Origin: Ophelia neglecta
Lineage: Eukaryota
NCBI GenBank assembly: GCA_965285935.1
Contig: OZ260667.1
Location: forward strand, 26,102,001-26,166,000
Direction of reading: 5' to 3'
Length of the DNA: 64,000 nt
Below, piece after piece: positions 10,400 to 32,539 of the stretch (position 1 is the first letter of the stretch; every line of letters begins with the position of its first letter). Both the position numbers and the translations under genes were made by a program. The notes under the pieces were generated by a model. It was not told where the DNA came from. It made no database searches and worked only from the letters and a program-made list of their open reading frames with translations.

Positions 10400-11140
10400 C
10401 ATAATGGCCACCAATGGGAAATGGATTAGTGAGTTGTAACACGGAAGGGCTCGCGATCTTAGTAACTTTGATAGTAGTATGCCAGGTGGTAAATAAGGAT
10501 ATCTTGGCATTAGCAACTTTTAACACAACAAAAATAGTGATGTCTTTTGTATTGTAGGCAAGCCCCATATATCATACTGTTACTCTTTTTTTCTAGAGCC
10601 ATACAGTCTATAGCTACTCTTTTGTTTTGTGCAGGAATGTCATTTAAACAGCAAGATTTATCCATTTAAAATAAACATGTATTTGTTCTCTGACGACTGG
10701 CACCGATATTCTATATACTAGGATCATCGTATATTCCTACGTATCTGTGAATCCTCAATCATCATCAACATTCACTTACATACACAACCGAACCGAAAAA
10801 TCATATAGTCTCATAAACAGCCGAGCAAACAAAATCACTATACCCGTATCAACTGCTCACACAGGCACATAATTAATGTAATACTGGCCTTTCCAAGTGT
10901 TCTTGATTTGATCAAATGTGCACTTTTAATCAACTATTATCCCTACAACACGGAATGCCCATACATCTACAATATATTTGCAACTGGAGAATACTCATAA
11001 GCAATCTTGGTGAATCACACATAGAATATATCTACAAGAAACCGTTTTGACCTTATGATTAAATACATTCTCTTTGACTAAAATTATTTCGTGGAAGAAA
11101 AACATCACTCAAATGGTTAATCATTGGTAGAGTTCTGATA
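10400..11140 (-). mobile_element. Highly degenerate LINE reverse-transcriptase relic (copy A of an old family)
   Basis: Alignable by eye (roughly 70% identity, estimated) to 20330-21050. Minus-strand translation gives eroded RT motifs: IRTLPMINHLSDVF (like YRPISLLNxLSKVF) and VVGIIVD*KCTFDQI (like DxxKAFD). Many stops and frameshifts. Confidence 0.55.
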
Positions 11141-12239: not shown

Positions 12240-13960
12240 ATTGCCCTCGAGTAACTTCTACAATTTACCAATAATCGAACAATACACTGGTCAGTTTGGG
12301 GCATTATTTGATTGGAGGGCCACATGCAGTCATGCAGTTTATCTTTTCTTATTACATCATAACATGTCGCGGGCCCAATTCTATGCACATTTTGTCAGTA
12401 TGGTTAGTCATTTGTTACCTTTGCCCTTACTAGCTGCTACCCGTGTGTTATACATGGTCCAGATATATTCTAGGGCATTCCTTCTTTCTTCAAATGGGTA
12501 TGAACAGGGCTGGAGACTAATTTCTAGATTATTAATTTCATGCTCATACTGGTTTGTTCTTAGCAAACATAGGGCGTCTCTTTCATTCTGTAGAGCCGGA
12601 CACTGAAGCATCAGGTGTTGTAAATTATCACTTGCTATATTACACATCGGACACTCCTTTTTCGTGTCTTGGAAGTGTCTGCCCTCGTGAGTGAAGAGGC
12701 ACGAAGTACATGTCAGGAACTAAATAAGTATTTGACATCCTCGCACAGATTGCATTTTGCTTGCCGATGGCCACCACTCTAATTGGTTATACGTTGTCGA
12801 GTATGTAAGGCATGGGATTCTCCATTTGGCTTCAATGTTCTTTATAAATGTCTGACGGCAGTGCTTCTTCCAGTGGCTTTTTCGTGGGGTTATGCCACAA
12901 TTCACAATCGTTAGAGGAAATCCGAGGTGAGTAACACTCCTTTTTTCGGGAATTATTTCCCCGTTTATTTTTATTGGGGTGAAATTGTTCGCTGTACTGG
13001 TCCCCATCTATGGATATCACACTTTGAAGTATTAAAATCTATTCGCCACTTTTGACTATAGGTTTCAGCAGCTGAGGACATTTTTTGTAGGTGGGCATTG
13101 CTGGTAGCGGCTAAGGTTATGTCATCGGCGAAGGCCGGTCAAGATACGTCTATGCCATATAGGCGGCAAACAGGTTCGCGTAGCATACCCTCCCCTCCAC
13201 ATTTTAGGAATTCACATATAAGCTTATTAGGAGGATAGCAACATGGATAGCTTCCCCCGTGGTGTAATCCCGGAGGACCTTGAATGGTTTTGACATTGTG
13301 TTGCCAATTTGAACTCTAATTCTGAAATTTTTGTAGCAGTTCCGGAGTATCCAGTATAGTTTTCCCTTTATTCCATAATGGTACATCTTGTAGAATAGAC
13401 CGTCCGTCCATACAGTGTCAAATGCCTTGCGACAATCTAAAAGTGCTACATGGACATAGCCATTCTAAACTTTATTTTCTTCGATCATTTGCCGAAGCAA
13501 CAGTTTCGTGTGGATGCTGGAGCAACCTTTATGCGAGATTCCCTGGAGTTGGTGTATGACGTCATTCTTCCGAGTCCACTTGTCAAGTCTGTGTAGGATA
13601 ACACCTTCAAATATCTTACGAAGGCTGCTTAGAAGTGTGATTTTTCTATAATTATCTTTTTCCAGCGGATCTTTCTTTCCCTCTTTAAACAGTGGAATTT
13701 CTATGTCTTTCCGTAAAGCATTTAGAATTGTTTCTGTATTTATCACTGCATTAAATAAGATGGTTACCAGCTTTGTAATAAGTTGTCCTCCATACTTCAA
13801 GTGCTCGGTAGTTAAACCATCATAACCGCCTGCTTTCCCGAGTTTCATTTCTCTTATGACCTTTTCAACTTCAATTATTTCGATTTTATTTCGCAATATA
13901 GTGTCATCTGAGGTTCCAGGCTTTTCATCGACGTCTCTGTTGCTATAGCAACAAGTCTTA
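12240..13960 (-). pseudogene. 5'-truncated non-LTR retrotransposon ORF2 (RT + C-terminal Cys/His knuckle), RTE-X-like, disrupted
   Basis: Motifs KAGGYDGLTTEHLKYGG, IPLFKEGKKD...NYRKITLLS, LLDCRKAFDTVW, PAFADDITL (13121-13132 encodes FADD), WRIDFNTSKC and CPMC...HLMLQCPALQNER. In-frame stops and frameshifts split it over ORFs 13465-13971, 13204-13386, 12720-13007 and 12408-12647. The clade call is from motif recall. No TSD was found. Confidence 0.9.
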
Positions 13961-14154
13961 TAGAAAGACAATATAATTCCTTCTGCGCATGCACATGACA
14001 GTTGTAATGATTGGAAAAAAATACAATAAGATACAGTAAAGGGAAATGAACAAGCGTAATTTTCACTGTAAACGTAAGTCCAAAGAAAGCGATTAGTGTA
14101 TTATGTTGTTATCAATATTACGTTGAGGACAACTATTTGTGTTAACAACCAAGC

Positions 14155-15043
14155 CTATCCGTAATAATTTGTACGTCGTATGGTCAGGGAGCCAGTCACC
14201 TGCAGAAATATAAACAGAACTATCATTATAGATCCTATTATAAGTGCTACCAGTGAGCAGCGGAATGCTGTTTTCGAGCTGTTCTGCGCAGCATCAAATT
14301 GCCCACGGCCATTTTGGTCGTTAGTGCGCACCGCGTAGATGATCGCAGCGATACCTATCGGCCAGCAGCAGCAAATACAGGTGAAAATGGCAAACCCAAG
14401 GTAGCTGTTGGCCGGGTTGCCGGTTGTCTTGTCGGTAACAACTACAACCTGTTGCTGTGGTTGTCCAGGATAGGGCTGCTCTTGTGGTTGTCCAGGGTAG
14501 AACTGCTGTTGTGGTTGTCCAGGGTAGACCTGCTGTTGTGGTTGGCCCGGGTAAGGCTGCGGTTGTGGTTGTCCTGGATAGGGCGGCTGTTGTGGTTGTC
14601 CTGGATAGGGCGGCTGTTGTGGTTGTACCGGGTAGAACTGCTGTTGTGGTTGTCCTGGATAGGGCGGCTGTTGTGGTTGTACCGGGTAGAACTGCTGTTG
14701 TGGCTGTCCTGGATAAGGCTGCTGTTGTGGTGGATTGGTGTAAGCCTGACCAGCTGAGAATATAAGAAATGGGTATAACCGTAAATCAAGGAAGCATTTA
14801 ATTTTAAAAAAACTCTGATGATGTTTAATCTGTTTTTTTAACATCGAGAACAACTACACGACGGATTTTTCCAGAGACCTAACCACGCGCTCCGGAGAGA
14901 TTTTGTTCTTTTTATAAAATATGTGTTTACGTTCAGTTCATCCTCGTAAAGTGCAGCAACTAAGCGCTATTATTGTATTGATTATCATAAAGTGTCTAAT
15001 CAGTTTTACCGAAATATGAAGGAGGTGGTTGTTTTTCATCCAT
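14155..15043 (-). CDS. CD225/dispanin family protein (IFITM/PRRT1-like) with Pro/Gln/Tyr-rich N-terminus, about 210 aa
   Basis: Coding exon 15043-15010 (MDEKQPPPSYF, donor G|gtaaaa) splices in phase 1 to 14753-14155 (acceptor ttctcag|). CD225 domain: PANSYLGFAIFTCICCCWPIGIAAIIYAVRT...G.FDAAQNSSKTAFRCSLVALIIG plus a C-terminal TM. An acceptor just upstream of the ATG (exon starts at 15051) implies a non-coding first exon. Confidence 0.92.
14455..14730 (-). repeat. Coding 27-bp tandem repeat, ten units encoding PQQxxYP(G/V)Q
   Basis: Units: PQQQPYPGQ, PQQQFYPVQ, PQQPPYPGQ, PQQQFYPVQ, PQQPPYPGQ, PQQPPYPGQ, PQPQPYPGQ, PQQQVYPGQ, PQQQFYPGQ, PQEQPYPGQ. A 54-bp two-unit block is duplicated (about 14587-14694). 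Confidence 0.95.
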
Positions 15044-21050: not shown

Positions 21051-21399
21051 TATATTGTTTTTTTATGTGAATAGACTCAAGTCAGGAATGAACAATGGTG
21101 TGTGCACATATTCTTGTTTTAGAGTGAAATCCGAGACATAACCGTGTGCAAAACCATTTGATATATTTTCAGACTTTAGTCTCATTTCACAGGTCTCTTT
21201 TTTTCGAACCACTGGCTTGGATTCTGCTATCCAGCGCGGAGAAAGTGGTTGAAGTATTTAAAGTGCACGAGTATTTACATGTAGTTTGACTACACGAAAA
21301 ATACAGAGATAATAGTAATATAATTGAAGTACCAAGTAGAACGAACCATTTACTCAGTAGGACCTAAATATTTTAGATAACATATATCTATATATTTCC

Positions 21400-24300
21400 T
21401 CACGTGAACACGGGCGAATAACTAGTCCACACATATGTAAACATCAAGAACAGCATTGTATATATGAGCGAGGCGGTGTGTCTAGCAGAGGTGTTAAGGG
21501 AATGCGATTCTTGAGGGTCCTTAGAGTCTTTGTTGGCCTTCTGTTGGGAGCCGTCTGCTCTAGTCACTGTCTCGTCTGGCTCGAGCGAGATCCTATAATA
21601 TGTGTCCTCATCCTTAAAATCATATTCCTCCATGTCCTCTTCCGGTGGTCGTGGCTCCTGGGTAGCGAAAAACCAATTTATGTTTCTGTTGTCTTGCATA
21701 GGGACTGGAGTAGATTTGGTTGTTGGCTTTGATGGCTCTTTATGCTTACCGCGGGCGGAAGGCGTCCATGCTGTAGGGAAAGATGGGCGCTCTGTAAAAC
21801 TACTTGGGGTGGCTCTCATAGTCCTATATCCTCTATCTCTGTCGTCAGTTGGCATGATAACGTCATAGGTGACTTGAGTGTTTGCGTCCCATGGTGAATA
21901 TCTTGTGCGTGGACGATAGGTTGTGTAAATGACAGTAGTTGTACTGGTTGATTGAGTAGTTGTGGAAGGGGTGGTGAGAGGCAATGTTGTGATTTTAGAA
22001 ATTGCGGTAGATGGTTTTGAGATGGAAGTAGAGGATGTAATTACTGTGCTCGTACTTGATACGGTAGTAGTGGTCGCAGGTGCTCTAGTTGATTTCGTTG
22101 TTGTAGTAGTTTTGGTTGTGCCTAATGGAATTGGAATATTTGTCGTTGGTCTTTGGTTGTCATTCACCCCCGGGCGACCATGGACCTGTGTCCTACGGGT
22201 GGTTGACCGTGCTTCGTATGGGGATGTGATAAATATCCTATCTGATTCGAAGTTAGGACCTCCCATGGGAAAAACGTCAGAGATATTATTACCAAAGCTT
22301 CCGAAGGCACCAACGGGACCTTCTTCCCCACACAGGTCGATGTTCCACCATTTGTGGAAAAGCCTCTGTAGCTCTCCTTGTTGTTGTAGAGTGATAAGAG
22401 CTCGGTCAAACTCTGCCACCAGTGAATTGCCTTGCTTGAAAGCAAAGGAATAGTGTGTGATAGAGAGAAATTGGTCCAAAGATATGAGGTCACATGGTGG
22501 TTGTGAGGCTATGAACGCTGAGTCGGTCGACTCCACAATAAGTGCGAAGTTCTGGTCCCGGACTCTACGAAGCCCATTCTCCATGTTCGACACGATGTTA
22601 CTTCTGTCTTGTCGTATTCTTGACCACACATCTTTGTAAAGGGGCAACTTGGATTTCTTCAGGATCTTCTCTACTCGACTATGGCGTATCACACCAATAT
22701 TTACCTGAAGACGTACATATATAAACATATACAGAAAGGCAATATCACGTACTCATTTTTTCACTCTTCTACTAATATTAAACATTGTGCATATTTAGCA
22801 GTATATCGTCGAAAAAAGGAAAATTATCAGACAGATGACTACAATTTGCTTGTAGCGGTTTTCTCTTTGACCAAAATGATTCAGATCCTTTAGATAAAAA
22901 CATAACAGAATGAGAGAACATAATCTGTTCACCGATGTTTGGTTAAGTACATCTTCTAGGAAGAAGATTTCCAGCCCATCCTCGCTTTCAGGGGATTTCA
23001 TGATCAGAGAGAAGGTGGAGTGAAGGAATGGCTTGGAGAAATCCAAGATACGCTCCTTTTTAGCATCCACTGTGAAAGGTGCAGCCCCTACATCAGCTCC
23101 CTGGCGATAATTTCTTATACATTAAAATCAATAAACACTGGAAGTATATAGAATGTTTGGCATGCAAACTTCATTTCTTCAAGATATCCAAACAAATGTT
23201 AATAAGTTTTAAAGGAGTCTAACCGACTTAAAAAATTAAAACTATTATTTTCATTTTTGATATGTTTACGGGCCATATGATGTTCTTTTGTAATCCAACG
23301 TTTATAATCATGTAGTATATTGATTTATCACGCGACAGCATACTGGGTGTATGATCTCCTATAGGGGTCTTACTGATTTGCGGTAAACGGGCCATATGAT
23401 GTTCATGTAGTCTAACTTTAATATGAACGTTGTCGTACACTCTCAGCAAATAATGTTTAATTTTCTTATTCATTACAATATAGGTATGCCGAGTATAAAG
23501 CTGGATTATTATTACAATATCATTTGAAAATCCTCTAAAGCAATGGATTTGGACACCCTACCCGAGTCAAGATGTCTCCTATCATTCCGGACCATCTAAG
23601 TGCGCCTTTTTCACGTGACCTCTTTCCAAATGTTCGCTTGAGTCGCCACTGGTAGTCAAAGGGCACTAGTTGAGACATGAGGCTTACAAGATCAACAATG
23701 TAACCCTCAAAGGCTCCTTGCGGATTTCCCTCAGTCGCCCTCATAACGTATGGCGGTTTCAGTATCGTTGTCATAACTAAATTAATTGGTGGCACGGTCG
23801 ACGAGGATGCTAAAATTAATAAGGATAAAACATTAACATGGAATGTCCGAGGAAAGCAATATCATCAAATATGTTAATGTGATAAATCGGTTTCCAAATG
23901 AGTAATACGGCGATCAAGCCCACGGCTTGAGAAAAAAAAGTCATGGCCAAAATGTCTGAGCAGAAAAGACTGAAATGTTTAGTTTTCCTATGCGTTACAA
24001 CCTCCTGGTCATAAGAATCAATGAAAACACAACCTTGAATGGCGATTTCCGGCTGCAGCTGATGTGACAATTCGGGCTGTTTGCTCATACCCTCTGCGCA
24101 AGTGCCATTCCAAAATTTGCTCCTGAGCTGTTGCCAACGTCTCCTGTTAGCCATGACCGTAGTTATCCACTGATCGAATAGTGGCAGCCAGACACTGTTA
24201 TTCTGAAACCCCATGGCGTAGTATTGTCCTACATCAAAAGTGGAAGTAGTTATTAGGTCGCAGGGTTCGTCTTTTATGTAATAGTCTGCGCTCTCTTTCT

Positions 24301-25526
24301 CCATGACTAGGGCAAAGTTTGTTCGGCGAACTCTAGCAAATGCCTCGTGCACGTTGTTTACAACGTTCCTGCCAGAGTTTGCTTGGATATTTCTGTACAG
24401 TGTTTGTAATGTGTTGTCATTTGTGTGCCTGAGTATCTGCCAAGCAGTGTCTCGATGGACGACGCCATAAGCGATATTTGTCTGGTGAATGAGATCTTGG
24501 AAATTACGAATTTGTGACGGTCTTCCCCCGAGTGGACGTCTGAGTATGGCCGTGAGGCGAAGATGGTTGATCGGGACCGACAGTGACACGGTTCGCTCGT
24601 GGCGCGAAGTTGCTAGGATCGGCGCCAGCGCCATGTCCGCTTCCTACAATAGATGAAATAGTTTAAAATTTAGCACGTAGTTCCATTTACCCTGTCAATC
24701 TCCGTCATCTGGGTGAAGATAGCTTCGCATCATTTTTCGAACCGAGGAGTCGCCATGAAATAACATGGTGCGTTTAAACATGGTAACACTTACCCCTCGC
24801 GTTAGCTGTCCAATCAGGCCAGTCCATATGCCGCCCTCTAACTCTGTCCCCATTTGACCGTCACCCACCAACGACAACTGGAAAAGTTGATTCATAACTA
24901 ATAAGTCCAAAATCCCTCCGAATATGTATTGGAATAACGCCTTCAAGTTGCTTAAAGAAAGTACCAATACCTTGCTTACTTTATTACAATTGATAATGAA
25001 TTTAGAAAGTTTCTGACTTACCTGATAAGTTATATCCAAATCTCTACAGAACTCACGAAGAAGGTCACTATAAAATCCCGAATATCGCTCATTTCCAATC
25101 AGGCCAGGCATCCAGTTCAATGTAATGTATGGTTCATTCTAAAATAAAGAAATGACAGCGGTGAAAATCAAAAGGCCCTGAACTATGTTGACGATCCGCA
25201 GACAATTAAGCAGACGTAAATACAGCATGGAATTACTAAAAATGTATTTTAAATAAATATAACATTCTAATATTATAGAAAAACAATTATTTGTCTTTAA
25301 AAACAAATGCACATCACAATTCAGTCTTGTAACCTTAATGGCCAATTTGTCGTACTAGTGTATTCCGTGATATTGCCATTGACTTGGAATCACCTTTACA
25401 TTATTTTCATCGTCATTAAAACATAGTTTACATATAATCATACCTGTATCGTAAGCACTTGTAGCTTGGATGATGGCAACGGAGGAAGCGACGAAATAAA
25501 TGTTCCACGATTTCGAGGTCCTCTGC
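21400..25526 (-). CDS. Channel-less tandem iGluR ligand-binding-domain protein: (S1-S2)x2 + mucin-like stalk + GPI-like/hydrophobic C-terminus; 5' partial, at least 852 aa
   Basis: Frame-consistent GT-AG exons: 25526-25444, 25138-25022, 24877-24794, 24643-24091, 23809-23562, 23100-22933, 22704-21400. Domain 1: LQVLTIQNEPY, YSGFYSDLL, WTGLIGQLTRGEADMALAP, YG, FALVME, EPCDL, FWNGTC. Domain 2: MTTILKPPYVM, FEGYIVDLV, WSGMIGDILTRGADVGAAPFT, DFSKPF, FALIVEST, PPCDL, GELQRLFHKWW..DLC. No premature stop and no TM between S1 and S2. Confidence 0.9.
21916..22149 (-). other. Thr/Ser/Pro-rich mucin-like stalk (coding)
   Basis: Translation PTTNIPIPLGTTKTTTTTKSTRAPATTTTVSSTSTVITSSTSISKPSTAISKITTLPLTTPSTTTQSTSTTTVIYTTY. 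Confidence 0.85.
22330..23790 (-). other. iGluR-type ligand-binding domain 2 (S1+S2 fused)
   Basis: The S1 end LIMKSP is joined by ESEDGLE to the S2 start IFFLEDVLNQTS inside exon 23100-22933. The domain ends at KWWNIDLC. Confidence 0.9.
24091..25470 (-). other. iGluR-type ligand-binding domain 1 (S1+S2 fused)
   Basis: The S1 end ILRRP is joined by LGGRPSQ to the S2 start IRNFQDLIHQTNIAYG inside exon 24643-24091. Confidence 0.88.
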
Positions 25527-28029
25527 CTAGAAAAAAATCGTTTTAATATCATTTTGGTATATGCTATGAAACTGGTGTGGGTAAGCGTAAGAAGGATTTT
25601 GAGATAATGCTCAATGAAAGTTTCATTCTAAAGATCCAATACGAATATAATGCTACGTGGCAGTGACTTAATCTTGTGTGTCCATTCACATTCACAAGAA
25701 AATCTTAGTTCAGGGGCAAAGAGCTACATCTAGATTGTCGAACGTTGATAATTGCTTCGGATTTTAGCCCACAAAGAAGTTAAAAAAGTGTAAAACAATA
25801 TTCCTAGCTGGGTGTCAGCGTCTCAGATGAGAATATTAGTGGCTCTAAGTATTATCTCAACCTTTGGTTTACATTTAATATGTGTTGACAGCCGCTTATT
25901 TAAAACGATTTCTATTTTTATAACGTTGAAAACAAAGGTACGTTGGAGAAGAATATTGCAAAAATATACTTAATTGGGGTGGATAGTTAAGAATTATGGC
26001 ATTTTAAAAATAATAGTGCCCTATGCCTACCATCAACATTAGCAACATATGAAATGAAAGAAGGAAAAAATGACACCCTGAAAAGTCATCTTAGGGTAAG
26101 AAGATAAAGGAGACGTAAGTAAGCCATAAACCATACATTTTGATAGGCTCTGACAGATGTAAAAACACTTTACCGAAAATAAATCAGCAATAAGGGTGTT
26201 AACAGTGTTTGACATTTAATTTTTTCATCCTACTAGATGCTCGAATAGCAGCCACTAACTTAATATGTCATAAGCTACTGCATGTGGGTACCTGATCCAA
26301 GATAAATACCTTATTGATATTAATGAACTTCTGACGAACAAGGAATCTCAAGAACAGGAGGATGCCGCCTAGTTGTTATTTAGGCCCTATATCATGTTTT
26401 CGTTACAACAACAAGATAATGACTCTAATAAGATAAATTAATTTGTGGTCTGTTTTTAGAAATATCTACCATATGTAAAGATAGTTTGTAAGCATGTTTG
26501 CTAATAAAGAATTAAATATACAGCTTTTGGCTAGAAAAGTATGGATCATCCTGATAAGTCAACCAGATACTACATTCCGTTTACCGCTTATCAAGCCTTG
26601 CGAGGCTGATCACAGGGTAAGCGTCCATTATGTTTCTTGCTAAAATTTAAATTCATAAGTGACGGGCATGCATTCGCGTGGAGTTTACTTTCAATGTTTG
26701 TTTATTTTTAATTGGTATGTTTTGTTACTAAGAAAAATAGAAATATATTTTCTACTATCATCCGTATTACGGTAAACAATGAATTTCTTCCGTATGTGAA
26801 TGCAGAGAAGTTAAAATAAAAACATATGAATAAAGTTTGTAAAAGTGCCATGGAGTAGTCATTAACATATTCTTTTTTTAAAAGAAAGTTTGAAAAAATG
26901 AAAATCACGAATTAAAAACTAACTTTATACTGCCAATCAGACAGATTTTCGTTCAGGCCGGAAGGGTATTCGATCCGAATTATTAAGCATACTTGCAATT
27001 TTAAACATAGGCAAGTCCAGATTGTAGAAAATGGCAGGAAAGTGGAAATAAACAATATGTTGAACGTGTGCTATGACATACAGCATGGTAAGACCTACAG
27101 AAAGTACATGCCCGTATGTATGCATTTAGATCGAAAACAGTTTTCCTAAACATAGAGAACACCTCAGTTCTAACCAGAAACACAAACACATTAACATTGT
27201 TTCTATTCATCAAATCAGCTGAACATATTACTCTGAGAATGTACTTTTCCGACATATGACTACCAGGTCAATGACAATATAAGTTTAGCTGTCGTGAAAA
27301 GCTAACCTTCATATATATCACAGCACCTTCTCTTTCATAATTCCAGAGCTGTCAAGCAGTATAGACGAATGCAATGTTTTACATTAATTTATCATATGAC
27401 GGTAATTGGTGATCATAATTCTGGTAATGACTATTTAGATACAGATTATAAGGCACTATTTATTGATGTGTGTTCTAAAGTATCAAACACCAACGTGTTT
27501 ATGGTGCCTGCGAATGTAAAAGAGCTTTGATGATTCTCCTCCAGGACAGATCATTTTTATTCAAAATTGTGGATGGAACCTGAGTTGCCCCTCGTGTCTT
27601 TCGCACATCAGCACATAGTATAATGTATTACCATCGTCATGTGTATTTATGAAAATTTGGCAATACACTTTAACCTAATGATAATCTTGCCTTTCCACGC
27701 ATAGGACTATCTGTTCAAATCAGGCTACACGCCTAAAGCCTAAAGCAAGGCAATGTCACTTAATATACAAATAACTGTATCGCTTTTCTTTTCACACTTG
27801 GCTGTTTATATACACATTAGCATGTATCATTGTGATAAAAGTTTACCTAAAATGACATTGGCATTTCACATAATCTTGGAAGAATATCTATTTTATGCCT
27901 GAATTAACACGGATGCCGCTAAAAAAAGAGAACTCCGTATGAACGTCTCAATTCACTAGCGTCTGACAGCAAAACCATTGATTTTGTGGGTTATTCTATA
28001 TTTATTTCCAAGCCCACCCACATTCTTAC

Positions 28030-31100: not shown

Positions 31101-32539
31101 GCGTAGACTAAACATCTTAAAGAAAGACCAGAACAAGAAGTTTTATTATACCTATCTTCTATATATGCCTGAAAGTAACATATACTGAATTTTAGGTTGA
31201 GTTTCGTAAATAGTAGATTAGTATGAAGAGGTACCCGTTTCTACATTTACAAATTGGTACGATCAGCGTTTGCCTTTCCGCCTTGTCTTTAGGTATACTT
31301 AAGGAAATGTAGAAAAAAACAAATTGAATGACAGTATCCGAGGCTAGCCTATACTCCCAGAAGAAGATACACATAGAACAGCATAATTCAAATCAGTAAA
31401 CTCTGAAAAAAGTCACAGTTGATATAAAAAATATGAACCGTTTTGAAATAGGCGTCTCTTTTCATAACTCTCTTCCGAATACAAAATTCATTCCTTAGGT
31501 CGATCCAGATTCGACACAATGTCATTTTTTCTCGTGTGTTACGTTTTTTAACGATTACTTTTTAACAATTAATTAATGGCTCGTAAGGGTCCGAAAGTAA
31601 TTTGTTGCATTTACATGACATAAAAATGTACATTTACAAGTACAATTCAGCGTATTTGTTACTCAGTTCTTCCTAAAGATAAGGCCGATTGAAATCTTCT
31701 CATTTCTGTTTTTTGCAAGGGGTTTTCAAGATTTAGGAACAAAGTTGCTTACATCGTTTGTCTCCGGAAATACATTGTAAATTGATGAGAAACAGCACGA
31801 GAAATATCAACATGTACCCATGCAGACAGATCTTTGAAACTTCCCAGTACGCATATTCATGTATCTTTCTGGAACATTCGGTTCTAAGGATCCATAGAAT
31901 TAAAGGATGAACAGTGTTCTAGGGGGTTTAGGTTCCCCATCAAGGAGATATAAAGTTTTATGACTGCTGAACCCAGCAGATTACCTTTTTATCACAATTG
32001 ATCTTTAGTCTCTATAGTATTGGGTATTTCGTCCCTAGATCAATTATCGACAATCAGTTGATTAAGCTTTTTATTTGAGCAGGTCCTTGGTGAGCACCGA
32101 AGGAATTCGTTATAATGGGGGCTATGGCTCGGGGGAGCAATTTGCATCTTGTGTTAGCTATAATGGTAATTACCAGCAAAGGAATGTGGTGGAGATATTC
32201 TGAATTACGGCGATTTACTTTGTAAATTGCGTTGGACACAACCGCCCTCAAGGAAGTTATCAATCAGCAGTGTGGACAGGACTAAACCCCGACGAGCAAT
32301 GAGAAAGTCGACGCAGAAGGCCACAATATTGATCAATGTGAAACTATTTCACTGCGAGATACCATGCATGCATGCATGTAAAACTTCTTGATTGAAACAA
32401 ATAAATAAAATAAGTGTGGACACATATGGGTTTTTCTAACATTTACTTGTAAGGCTGTTTCCGATGCCCTAAAAGATAGATCAAGTGTGGCATCTGAGAA
32501 TAATTTACAACGTTCATTTAGTATATGGACTATTCGTGA

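Follow-up and report, generated by a model that had tools for sequence, protein, structure and literature searches.

A tandem gene for pore-less, glutamate receptor-type ligand-binding domains on a predicted mucin-like stalk in the annelid Ophelia neglecta

Soluble S1S2 cores, in which the S1 and S2 segments of the ligand-binding domain (LBD) of an ionotropic glutamate receptor (iGluR) are joined by a short linker, are the workhorse of glutamate-receptor structural pharmacology and are regarded as a laboratory invention. The precedent for a channel-less binding domain is the acetylcholine-binding protein (AChBP) of the Cys-loop family, and the vertebrate kainate-binding proteins of frog, chick, and fish are small iGluR relatives without the amino-terminal domain (ATD) and with uncertain channel function. 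Here, we describe a gene in a 64,000-nt stretch of the Ophelia neglecta genome (GCA_965285935.1, contig OZ260667.1, positions 26,102,001 to 26,166,000), which is called the window throughout and whose positions are used unless a contig is named. The gene lies on the minus strand and comprises seven exons, from 25526 down to 21400, with GT-AG borders and phases that are all compatible. Its predicted product carries, in this order, two LBDs of the AMPA/kainate/delta type (LBD1 and LBD2), a stalk rich in Ser, Thr, and Pro, an acidic region, and a hydrophobic C-terminus.

Like the laboratory cores (GluA2, GluK1-4, and GluD1; PDB 5ikb, 4qf9, and 1ftj), the tandem protein has a short hydrophilic linker at the same point, a collinear alignment, and a superposing fold, but it is natural, selected, duplicated, and putatively tethered, shares only ~22-25% identity with them, and has a non-canonical pocket. 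With the AMPA/kainate/delta/phi (AKDF) iGluRs and the protostome ionotropic receptors it has in common a homologous LBD (PF10613), the S1 motifs, and the S2 disulfide, whereas the M1-P-M3 segments, the SYTANLAAF motif, M4, and, by analogy with its family, probably the ATD are missing. The vertebrate kainate-binding proteins keep all membrane segments, of which the tandem protein has none. A first-pass annotation of the window had proposed an AChBP-like counterpart for the iGluR family. This holds for the channel-less architecture but not beyond analogy, since the folds are unrelated: what molluscan and annelid AChBP share with the tandem protein is the concept of a channel's binding domain freed from the pore, whereas AChBP is a Cys-loop beta sandwich and a secreted pentamer and the tandem protein a bilobed clamshell that is probably membrane-tethered. 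Bacterial SBP_bac_3 proteins (GlnH, HisJ, and LAOBP) have the same class II bilobed fold in a continuous chain and work by docking to a membrane partner; they are, however, ancestrally pore-less and prokaryotic, whereas the annelid family, by similarity, falls within the iGluR LBDs of animals. Closest are single-LBD relatives from annelids, which show the same S1-linker-S2 junction, the phase-0 intron before the EADxAA strand, the invariant S2 disulfide, the lack of ATD, transmembrane segments 1-3, and M4, and a short hydrophobic tail. The tandem gene differs from them by its two LBDs, a mucin stalk of ~90 residues, an acidic region of ~135 residues, and the absence of the pocket Arg, and its tail follows the LBD at a distance of ~290 residues instead of ~20-60.

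The exons and the regions encoded by them are listed here; L016 is an ENA contig with the orthologue from a second species and L017 a contig from a third species.

25444..25526, minus strand: first known exon, 83 nt, with phase-1 acceptor and phase-0 donor; pre-S1 linker and first beta strand of LBD1, …LPPLPSSKLQVLTIQ
L016 9054-9136: counterpart of the first known exon, 61% identity, length and boundaries identical
25022..25138, minus strand: exon 2, LBD1 S1, NEPYITLNW…GNERYSGF…; 72% identity to L016 9473-9589; weak PF10613 match
24794..24877, minus strand: exon 3, LBD1 S1, …GIWTGLIGQLTRG; 71% identity to L016 9741-9824
24034..24643, minus strand: exon 4, end of S1, loop, entire LBD1 S2, and inter-LBD linker; ends in phase 1; 56% identity to the orthologue
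24506..24538, minus strand: LBD1 S1-S2 junction, RP-LGGRPSQ-IR, within exon 4, at the M1-P-M3 site of channels
23562..23809, minus strand: exon 5, enters in phase 1; first strand and S1 of LBD2; PF10613 match with 50.8 bits, E 2e-13; acceptor and phase kept at L016 10874
22933..23100, minus strand: exon 6, LBD2, end of S1, linker, and start of S2; 80% identity to L016, proportion of non-synonymous differences (pN) 0.126
22966..22998, minus strand: LBD2 S1-S2 junction, KSP-ESEDGLE-IFFLED, within exon 6; ESDDGLE in L016
21400..22704, minus strand: exon 7, rest of LBD2 S2, stalk, acidic region, tail, and stop
22300..22704, minus strand: first 135 codons of exon 7, LBD2 S2 up to the KWW…C motif; 62% identity to L016 and 53% to L017; weak SBP_bac_3 match
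21910..22179, minus strand: mucin-like stalk, 90 residues, 60% Ser/Thr/Pro; a Thr-rich stalk stands at the same place in L016
21505..21909, minus strand: conserved juxta-membrane region, ~135 residues, with a NINWFFATQEPRPP motif and an acidic, Tyr-rich patch; 31% identity to L016, motif kept
21403..21468, minus strand: hydrophobic C-terminal tail, 22 residues, preceded by the small residues NTSA; stop at 21400-21402

The S1 of LBD1, encoded by exons 1-3 and the start of exon 4, is AMPA/kainate-like (…NEPYITLNW…GNERYSGF…GIWTGLIGQL…EADMALAP…), and the S2 in exon 4 reads IRNFQDL…IAYG…EPCDL…KFWNGTC. A spacer of ~25 residues separates LBD1 from the second S1 in exon 5, and the stalk and acidic region place ~290 residues between the S2 of LBD2 and the tail. 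A Pfam search of the juxta-membrane region (21505..21909) returned no family. The first-pass annotation had described seven frame-consistent exons and an intact open reading frame (ORF), and this was borne out by the GT..AG borders and matching phases on the minus strand and by exons free of stops in two species. It had also argued from the 7-residue S1-S2 linkers that the missing M1-P-M3 pore is not an annotation gap, and we located both junctions within exons, namely exons 4 and 6. Since each of them lies inside a single exon, no splice variant could insert a pore there.

The exons of the tandem gene were searched and folded one by one; a fold of a whole LBD was computed only for a relative, P0007. 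PF10613 (Lig_chan-Glu_bd) matched exon 5 of LBD2 with 50.8 bits (cut-off 30) and an ORF piece with exons 2 and 3 of LBD1 (24695-25120), which is a fragment, with 28.5 bits, just below the cut-off. Of the two Lig_chan-Glu_bd matches without a channel region that had been anticipated, the match in LBD2 and the lack of the channel domain PF00060 were thus found, whereas the LBD1 fragment fell short of the cut-off. Using phmmer against the PDB, we obtained one unbroken alignment of the exon 4 product with the GluK4 S1S2 construct 5ikb (E 4e-14). The exon is also collinear with the S1S2 constructs of GluD1, GluK1, and GluA2, the natural loop lying over the engineered GT linker, whereas with full-length receptors only the S2 part aligns. 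The AlphaFold2 model of exon 4 has a mean predicted local distance difference test score (pLDDT) of 88.5 and a predicted template modelling score (pTM) of 0.81, with ~96 pLDDT in the LGGRPSQ junction loop. In Foldseek it matched GluK1 S1S2 crystal structures best, with a root-mean-square deviation of 1.9 A over 175 columns; GluK4, GluK2, GluD1, and GluA2 ranked next, so that the suggested superposition on S1S2 cores, including that of GluA2, was indeed obtained. The claim of two AMPA/kainate-like clamshell domains is hence backed by PF10613, the S1S2 construct alignment, and the exon 4 fold. The full-length model of P0007 (Capitella ELT90099.1) has a pLDDT of 85 and forms a complete clamshell, which matched the S1S2 cores of GluA2, GluK1, and GluK2 with target-normalised TM scores of 0.86-0.91 at 35-37% identity. 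The sequence matches support an origin among AKDF-type iGluRs of animals and not among the binding proteins of bacteria.

No part of a channel was found in the gene. Its pieces gave no PF00060 match; the 48 matches in the whole genome all lie off chromosome C12, on C1, C2, C5, C7, C8, and C9. Neither the SYTANLAAF motif nor M1-P-M3 occurs in the tandem gene, where both junctions are 7-residue loops, and no M4 follows either S2: the S2 of LBD1 leads to LBD2 and that of LBD2 to the stalk. The sole hydrophobic segment of the product comprises its final 22 residues and is not followed by a cytoplasmic tail. The composition of exon 7 agrees with the earlier proposal that a mucin stalk and a hydrophobic C-terminus stand in place of M4. 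As predicted from its exons, the product cannot conduct ions.

The integrity of the locus was assessed with three DNA runs from one sample. Each of the three contigs covers at least 21393-25627 collinearly and without joints, and the three indels among them are all intronic, so assembly collapse is excluded. Sequence encoding transmembrane segments between S1 and S2, named beforehand as a possible sign of collapse, is not present in these contigs. Within the sample, the LBD parts contain four synonymous and one non-synonymous single-nucleotide polymorphisms. Using the fused-exon profile, we identified the orthologue on L016 as a 54%-identical protein. Every exon is found there in the same order and with the same boundaries and phases: the first exon has 83 nt, exons 2 and 3 are of equal length, exon 4 ends CAA G|GT in phase 1, exon 5 enters in phase 1, and exon 7 contains the Thr-rich stalk, the NI(N/D)WFFAT(Q/K)EPRPP motif, and a hydrophobic terminus. 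The proportion of synonymous differences (pS) across the 567 aligned codons of the LBDs is 0.81, i.e., saturated, and pN is 0.24; no exon contains a stop. The pN/pS of ~0.3 is uncorrected, as saturated synonymous sites allow no corrected ratio; it is not near 1, the value at which the gene would have been doubted. This pattern points to clear purifying selection on the tandem gene across a deep split. In the third species (L017, assembly GCA_022702835.1; P0159), S1b, linker, S2, stalk, and tail of LBD2 form one uninterrupted exon. The fused architecture thus recurs outside O. neglecta, with the full layout in L016 and the LBD2 part in L017. The most conserved exon of the tandem gene is exon 6 with the LBD2 junction loop (80% identity, pN 0.126), which hints that this loop, channel-facing in real receptors, may have turned into a functional surface.

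Two details of these contigs concern their annotation and introns. The public gene call P0158 for the last exon of L016 (~13030) reads a TGA as Trp and thereby adds six residues; with the standard code, the L016 protein ends in …IYKLFTS, right after the hydrophobic tail. In L017 (1-440), the intron before the LBD2 terminal exon is filled with a tandem repeat of ~58 bp, …ccatgacagttttacattgacaaactatatatta….

To place the gene among its relatives, we searched the genome with exon 4 and then with the A1 profile, counting loci in which S1b, linker, and S2 are one open frame. Exactly 13 full fused exons were detected, namely the LBD1 exon of the tandem gene and 12 single-LBD paralogues; the S2 of LBD2 is an extra, partial A1 match. 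Twelve of the 13 are on C12 (11 paralogues and LBD1, spread over 10-49.6 Mb, with paralogue L004 at 49.56 Mb) and one is on C5; one paralogue locus contains runs of N. The C12 loci are fully separate, by chromosome, from the genes with the channel domain. In all 12 paralogues the fused unit is the terminal exon, has the same phase-0 acceptor before the EADxAA strand, which exon 4 shares, and closes with a short hydrophobic tail 20-60 residues past the KWW…C motif. Such tails, equivalent to that of the tandem gene, are present in L016, L017, and all 12 paralogues. As a control, the canonical receptor L014 on C7 shows M3 and M4 flanking the same S2. LBD2 has an additional intron in this species that is not found in the third species. 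No other locus of the family was found to combine two LBDs with a long stalk, and the tandem gene is, judged from these comparisons, a derived, two-LBD, stalked variant of a single-LBD annelid family.

In public data, the A1 profile matched 11,628 proteins at E <= 0.001, the majority being conventional receptors or binding proteins of bacteria. Of the 150 top-ranking representative clusters (50% identity), 75 consist of pore-less proteins of 200-370 residues that are matched in one collinear stretch. Named members come from Capitella teleta (ELT90099.1 and ELU10795.1), Helobdella robusta (XP_009010895.1), Paralvinella palmiformis (KAK2168051.1), and Owenia fusiformis (CAH1773235.1 and CAH1779393.1); except for a fragment from a mite, the named set is entirely annelid, and it is uncharacterised. 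The first-pass annotation had suspected look-alikes in databases, and single-LBD annelid relatives do sit there as 'hypothetical proteins'. Full-length members have a signal-peptide-like start, PF10613 (103-109 bits) and SBP_bac_3 matches, and no PF00060; they have only 45-60 residues ahead of S1 and thus no ATD. The ESM Atlas contained nothing decisive on the family. Two full-length, uninterrupted family coding sequences are present on contigs of 1.6-1.9 kb in run ERR6338309 from another species. Because the family genes have introns, these contigs are probably spliced mRNA, which suggests that family members are transcribed. The run was ruled out as evidence from O. neglecta itself, as one contig matches at 69% of nucleotides and the other not at all.

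In a tree of the LBDs, LBD1 pairs with LBD1 of L016 (support 100) and LBD2 groups with LBD2 of L016 and L017 (99). The deeper branches are not resolved, and for pore loss four changes are inferred while one is also compatible; neither a sister relation of LBD1 and LBD2 nor a single loss of the pore can therefore be shown. In its expansion and in the diversity of its pockets, the family looks more like chemosensory families than like one transmitter buffer.

Several candidates for further tandem proteins were rejected. P0036, considered as a third tandem locus, proved to be a single-LBD paralogue; P0030, P0064, and P0093 are bacterial multi-SBP proteins, and P0001, P0002, and P0004 are gene models of channels that were wrongly merged or are duplicated. 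P0001 (Lineus longissimus XP_064648822.1) has 989 residues with two full ATD-less iGluR-like subunits, each with signal peptide, S1, transmembrane segments, S2, and M4, and probably represents two tandem genes fused by annotation. P0024, a fragment from the velvet mite Dinothrombium tinctorium (RWS07675.1), contains in one ORF, arranged head to tail, an S2, a full S1-linker-S2, and the beginning of a further unit; proteins with pore-less LBDs in tandem may thus occur beyond annelids as well.

The pockets of the tandem protein deviate from those of its family. Both Cys of the S2 disulfide (GluA2 C718-C773) are present in all 29 aligned LBDs, including LBD1 and the LBD2 orthologue, and in LBD2 of the window the pair was read directly from exon 7 (PPCDL and WWNIDLC). 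The carboxylate-binding Arg (Arg485) is kept in 26 of the 29, the three exceptions being LBD1 of the window, LBD1 of L016, and LBD2 of the third species, each with His. Read from the exon sequences, the Arg position of LBD2 holds Lys in the window, Leu in L016, and His in the third species. The canonical set (Arg485, Thr480, Ser654/Thr655, and Glu705) is replaced by L/H/T-A/E in LBD1, and in LBD2 of the window, K takes the place of the Arg and R-V that of the Ser/Thr pair, with the Glu kept. This amine-binding Glu is shared by LBD1 and by the LBD2 of two of the three species; in the third, Glu705 is Gln. With the Arg and the Ser/Thr pair lost from both pockets, the ligand is probably not glutamate or another standard alpha-amino acid. 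The role of transmitter buffer offered by the first-pass annotation is unlikely for the tandem gene, both of whose pockets lack an Arg kept in 26 of 29 family LBDs. A complete canonical pocket, P-T-R-S-T-E, is found in the single-LBD paralogues L009 (C12:28.93 Mb) and P0034, which by their residues would be the best candidates for a natural pore-less binder of glutamate or amino acids.

We favour, with a probability of about 0.62, the reading that this is one intact and selected gene for tandem pore-less clamshells on a mucin stalk, anchored at the cell surface as a module that captures, decoys, or presents a ligand. The two extracellular clamshells would be carried on an O-glycosylated mucin-like stalk with their heads tens of nanometres off the membrane, and the C-terminal hydrophobic signal, probably swapped for a glycosylphosphatidylinositol (GPI) anchor, would keep the protein on the cell surface. 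We infer secretion and membrane tethering from the predicted product, whose C-terminal pattern (NTSA, RHTAS, 14 hydrophobic residues, end) is compatible with a GPI signal; the tail is likely to be such a signal or a tail anchor. The clamshells would most likely shut around a small soluble ligand or engage a partner via the conserved junction loop. The ligand would then be captured, sequestered, or presented, and any signal would be given via a separate membrane protein, analogous to GPI-anchored co-receptors or to the binding proteins of bacteria that dock to a transporter or chemoreceptor. A broader proposal, which we advance tentatively and which is more doubtful than the reading of the single gene, is that annelids possess a class of GPI-tethered capture or presenting clamshells that shed the pore once and then diversified, with the tandem gene as a double-headed, mucin-stalked member for a non-amino-acid ligand. 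This class, with at least 13 genes here and dozens of public 50%-identity clusters, may be likened to AChBP, GFR-alpha, and bacterial binding proteins.

Several observations weigh against the favoured reading. The tail is only moderately hydrophobic, and, with the Arg and the Ser/Thr pair lost from both pockets, the protein may be unable to bind any small ligand. None of the RNA runs searched carries the locus; the three carriers are the DNA contigs from one sample. When the upstream regions of both species were compared by tblastx and blastn for an exon with the initiator Met and signal peptide, only the known first exon was matched, and a strict upstream scan for a signal peptide with a donor found no first exon. 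In all 12 single-LBD paralogues the fused exon is the terminal exon, read-through of intron 4 behind exon 4 reaches a hydrophobic stretch in the window, and in L016 the 3' end of intron 4 (10783-10873) contains three in-frame ATGs followed by a hydrophobic run into exon 5. The pockets lead to what we consider the main rival, unlikely as it appears to us: LBDs without small-ligand binding in a structural, adhesive, or protein-docking mucin-like glycoprotein, with degenerate clamshells and the S1-S2 loop of LBD2 as an interface. Besides the missing family Arg and the loss of the S654/T655 equivalents, this rival would account for the variation of the LBD2 Arg position between species (K, L, H) and the change of Glu705 to Gln in the third one, for the fact that the most conserved exon carries the junction loop and not the pocket, and for the long mucin stalk. 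Both LBD1 orthologues, however, have the amine-binding Glu and a His in place of the Arg, suggesting a retuned rather than an abandoned pocket, and the clamshell core is strongly constrained. The same residue losses, together with the failure to find a start codon or an RNA run with the locus, could also be explained by a decaying relic or pseudogene of a glutamate receptor without channel exons, or by assembly collapse. We judge this highly improbable, given open exons throughout, splice sites kept in two species with saturated synonymous sites, pN/pS of ~0.3, a confident fold, collinear contigs from three runs with intronic indels only, and the same junction in 12 paralogues and many species. 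Even less credible is a horizontally acquired bacterial SBP_bac_3 protein that was continuous from the beginning. It would share the topology, and there are weak SBP_bac_3 matches as well as bacterial multi-SBP proteins among the distant matches, but in both sequence and structure the top matches are LBDs of kainate, delta, and AMPA receptors from animals, the PF10613 scores are strong, and the S2 disulfide and iGluR-specific motifs are present in the gene, as are spliceosomal introns whose positions are conserved.

That the locus might instead consist of two adjacent genes, an LBD1-only gene ending by read-through of intron 4 and a separate LBD2-stalk gene, would agree with the terminal position of the fused exon in the paralogues and with the hydrophobic translations of intron 4 in both species. 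We regard this as improbable. Intron 4 has only 224 nt (L016: 260 nt), which cannot accommodate the 3' end of one gene together with the promoter and first exon of the next, and in the window no in-frame ATG lies ahead of exon 5. The donor of exon 4 and the acceptor of exon 5 are both in phase 1 and have been kept across saturated divergence, whereas the read-through peptides show no conservation between the window and L016; moreover, hydrophobic translations of T-rich acceptor tracts are expected from composition alone. We thus infer that the tandem gene is a single transcript, while a separate LBD2-only product from an independent start is possible in L016. An LBD2-only isoform is also possible because the block from the first exon to exon 4 is phase 1-1, so that skipping it stays in frame. 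The read-through itself (23816-24033, minus strand) is open for 72 codons and contains the hydrophobic stretch …FFSQAVGLIAVLLIW…, which is not kept in L016; it may be a relic of an ancestral single-LBD tail or an intron-retention isoform.

At the 5' end, the first known exon opens at a phase-1 acceptor with an in-frame stop upstream in the window, which calls for at least one further 5' exon with the Met and signal peptide. An ATG at 25552 was rejected as the start, as it is in the wrong frame relative to exon 2, save with another donor, and the orthologue places the true exon at 25526-25444. No candidate ORF for an ATD (ANF_receptor) was found in the 10 kb upstream of the gene. A looser, rule-based scan gave the following top-scoring candidate, which stands without conservation or RNA support.

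31753..31813, minus strand: candidate first exon, unconfirmed, with ATG, 20 signal-peptide-like codons, and a phase-1 GTAAGC donor

A full-text literature search returned no description of pore-less iGluR LBD proteins. Three large published iGluR surveys drop sequences with fewer than four conserved SYTANLAAF residues (PMC6307864), with fewer than two predicted transmembrane helices (PMC12226733), or without M3 (PMC13648236). With such filters the family could be overlooked even though Capitella was sampled. The family is present in databases but apparently unstudied, and the stalked form with tandem LBDs appears to be a new architecture within it. If our reading is true, a natural, diversified family of pore-less LBDs would mean that evolution has made the same cut as the laboratory S1S2 constructs, and it would provide ready-made soluble domains with new ligand specificities. 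It would also open the question of what a channel-less clamshell does, be it as capture protein, decoy, co-receptor, or adhesion molecule. As the most derived member, the stalked tandem gene tests whether LBDs can be redeployed as multi-headed surface glycoproteins.

Two further ORFs were noted downstream of the tandem gene. On the same strand, ~6.5 kb away, an intact single-exon ORF (14158-14853, minus strand) codes for a CD225/dispanin domain (PF04505, 76.6 bits) preceded by a Pro/Gln-rich repeat (PYPGQPQQQ…). Among the CD225 proteins of vertebrates are the SynDIG and PRRT proteins, which associate with AMPA receptors; the closeness of the CD225 gene to the tandem LBD gene may be a coincidence. 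Adjoining the CD225 gene, a reverse-transcriptase-like ORF (13468-13971, minus strand; …GLTTEHLKYGG…), which has no Pfam match at E 0.01, is probably a retroelement fragment.

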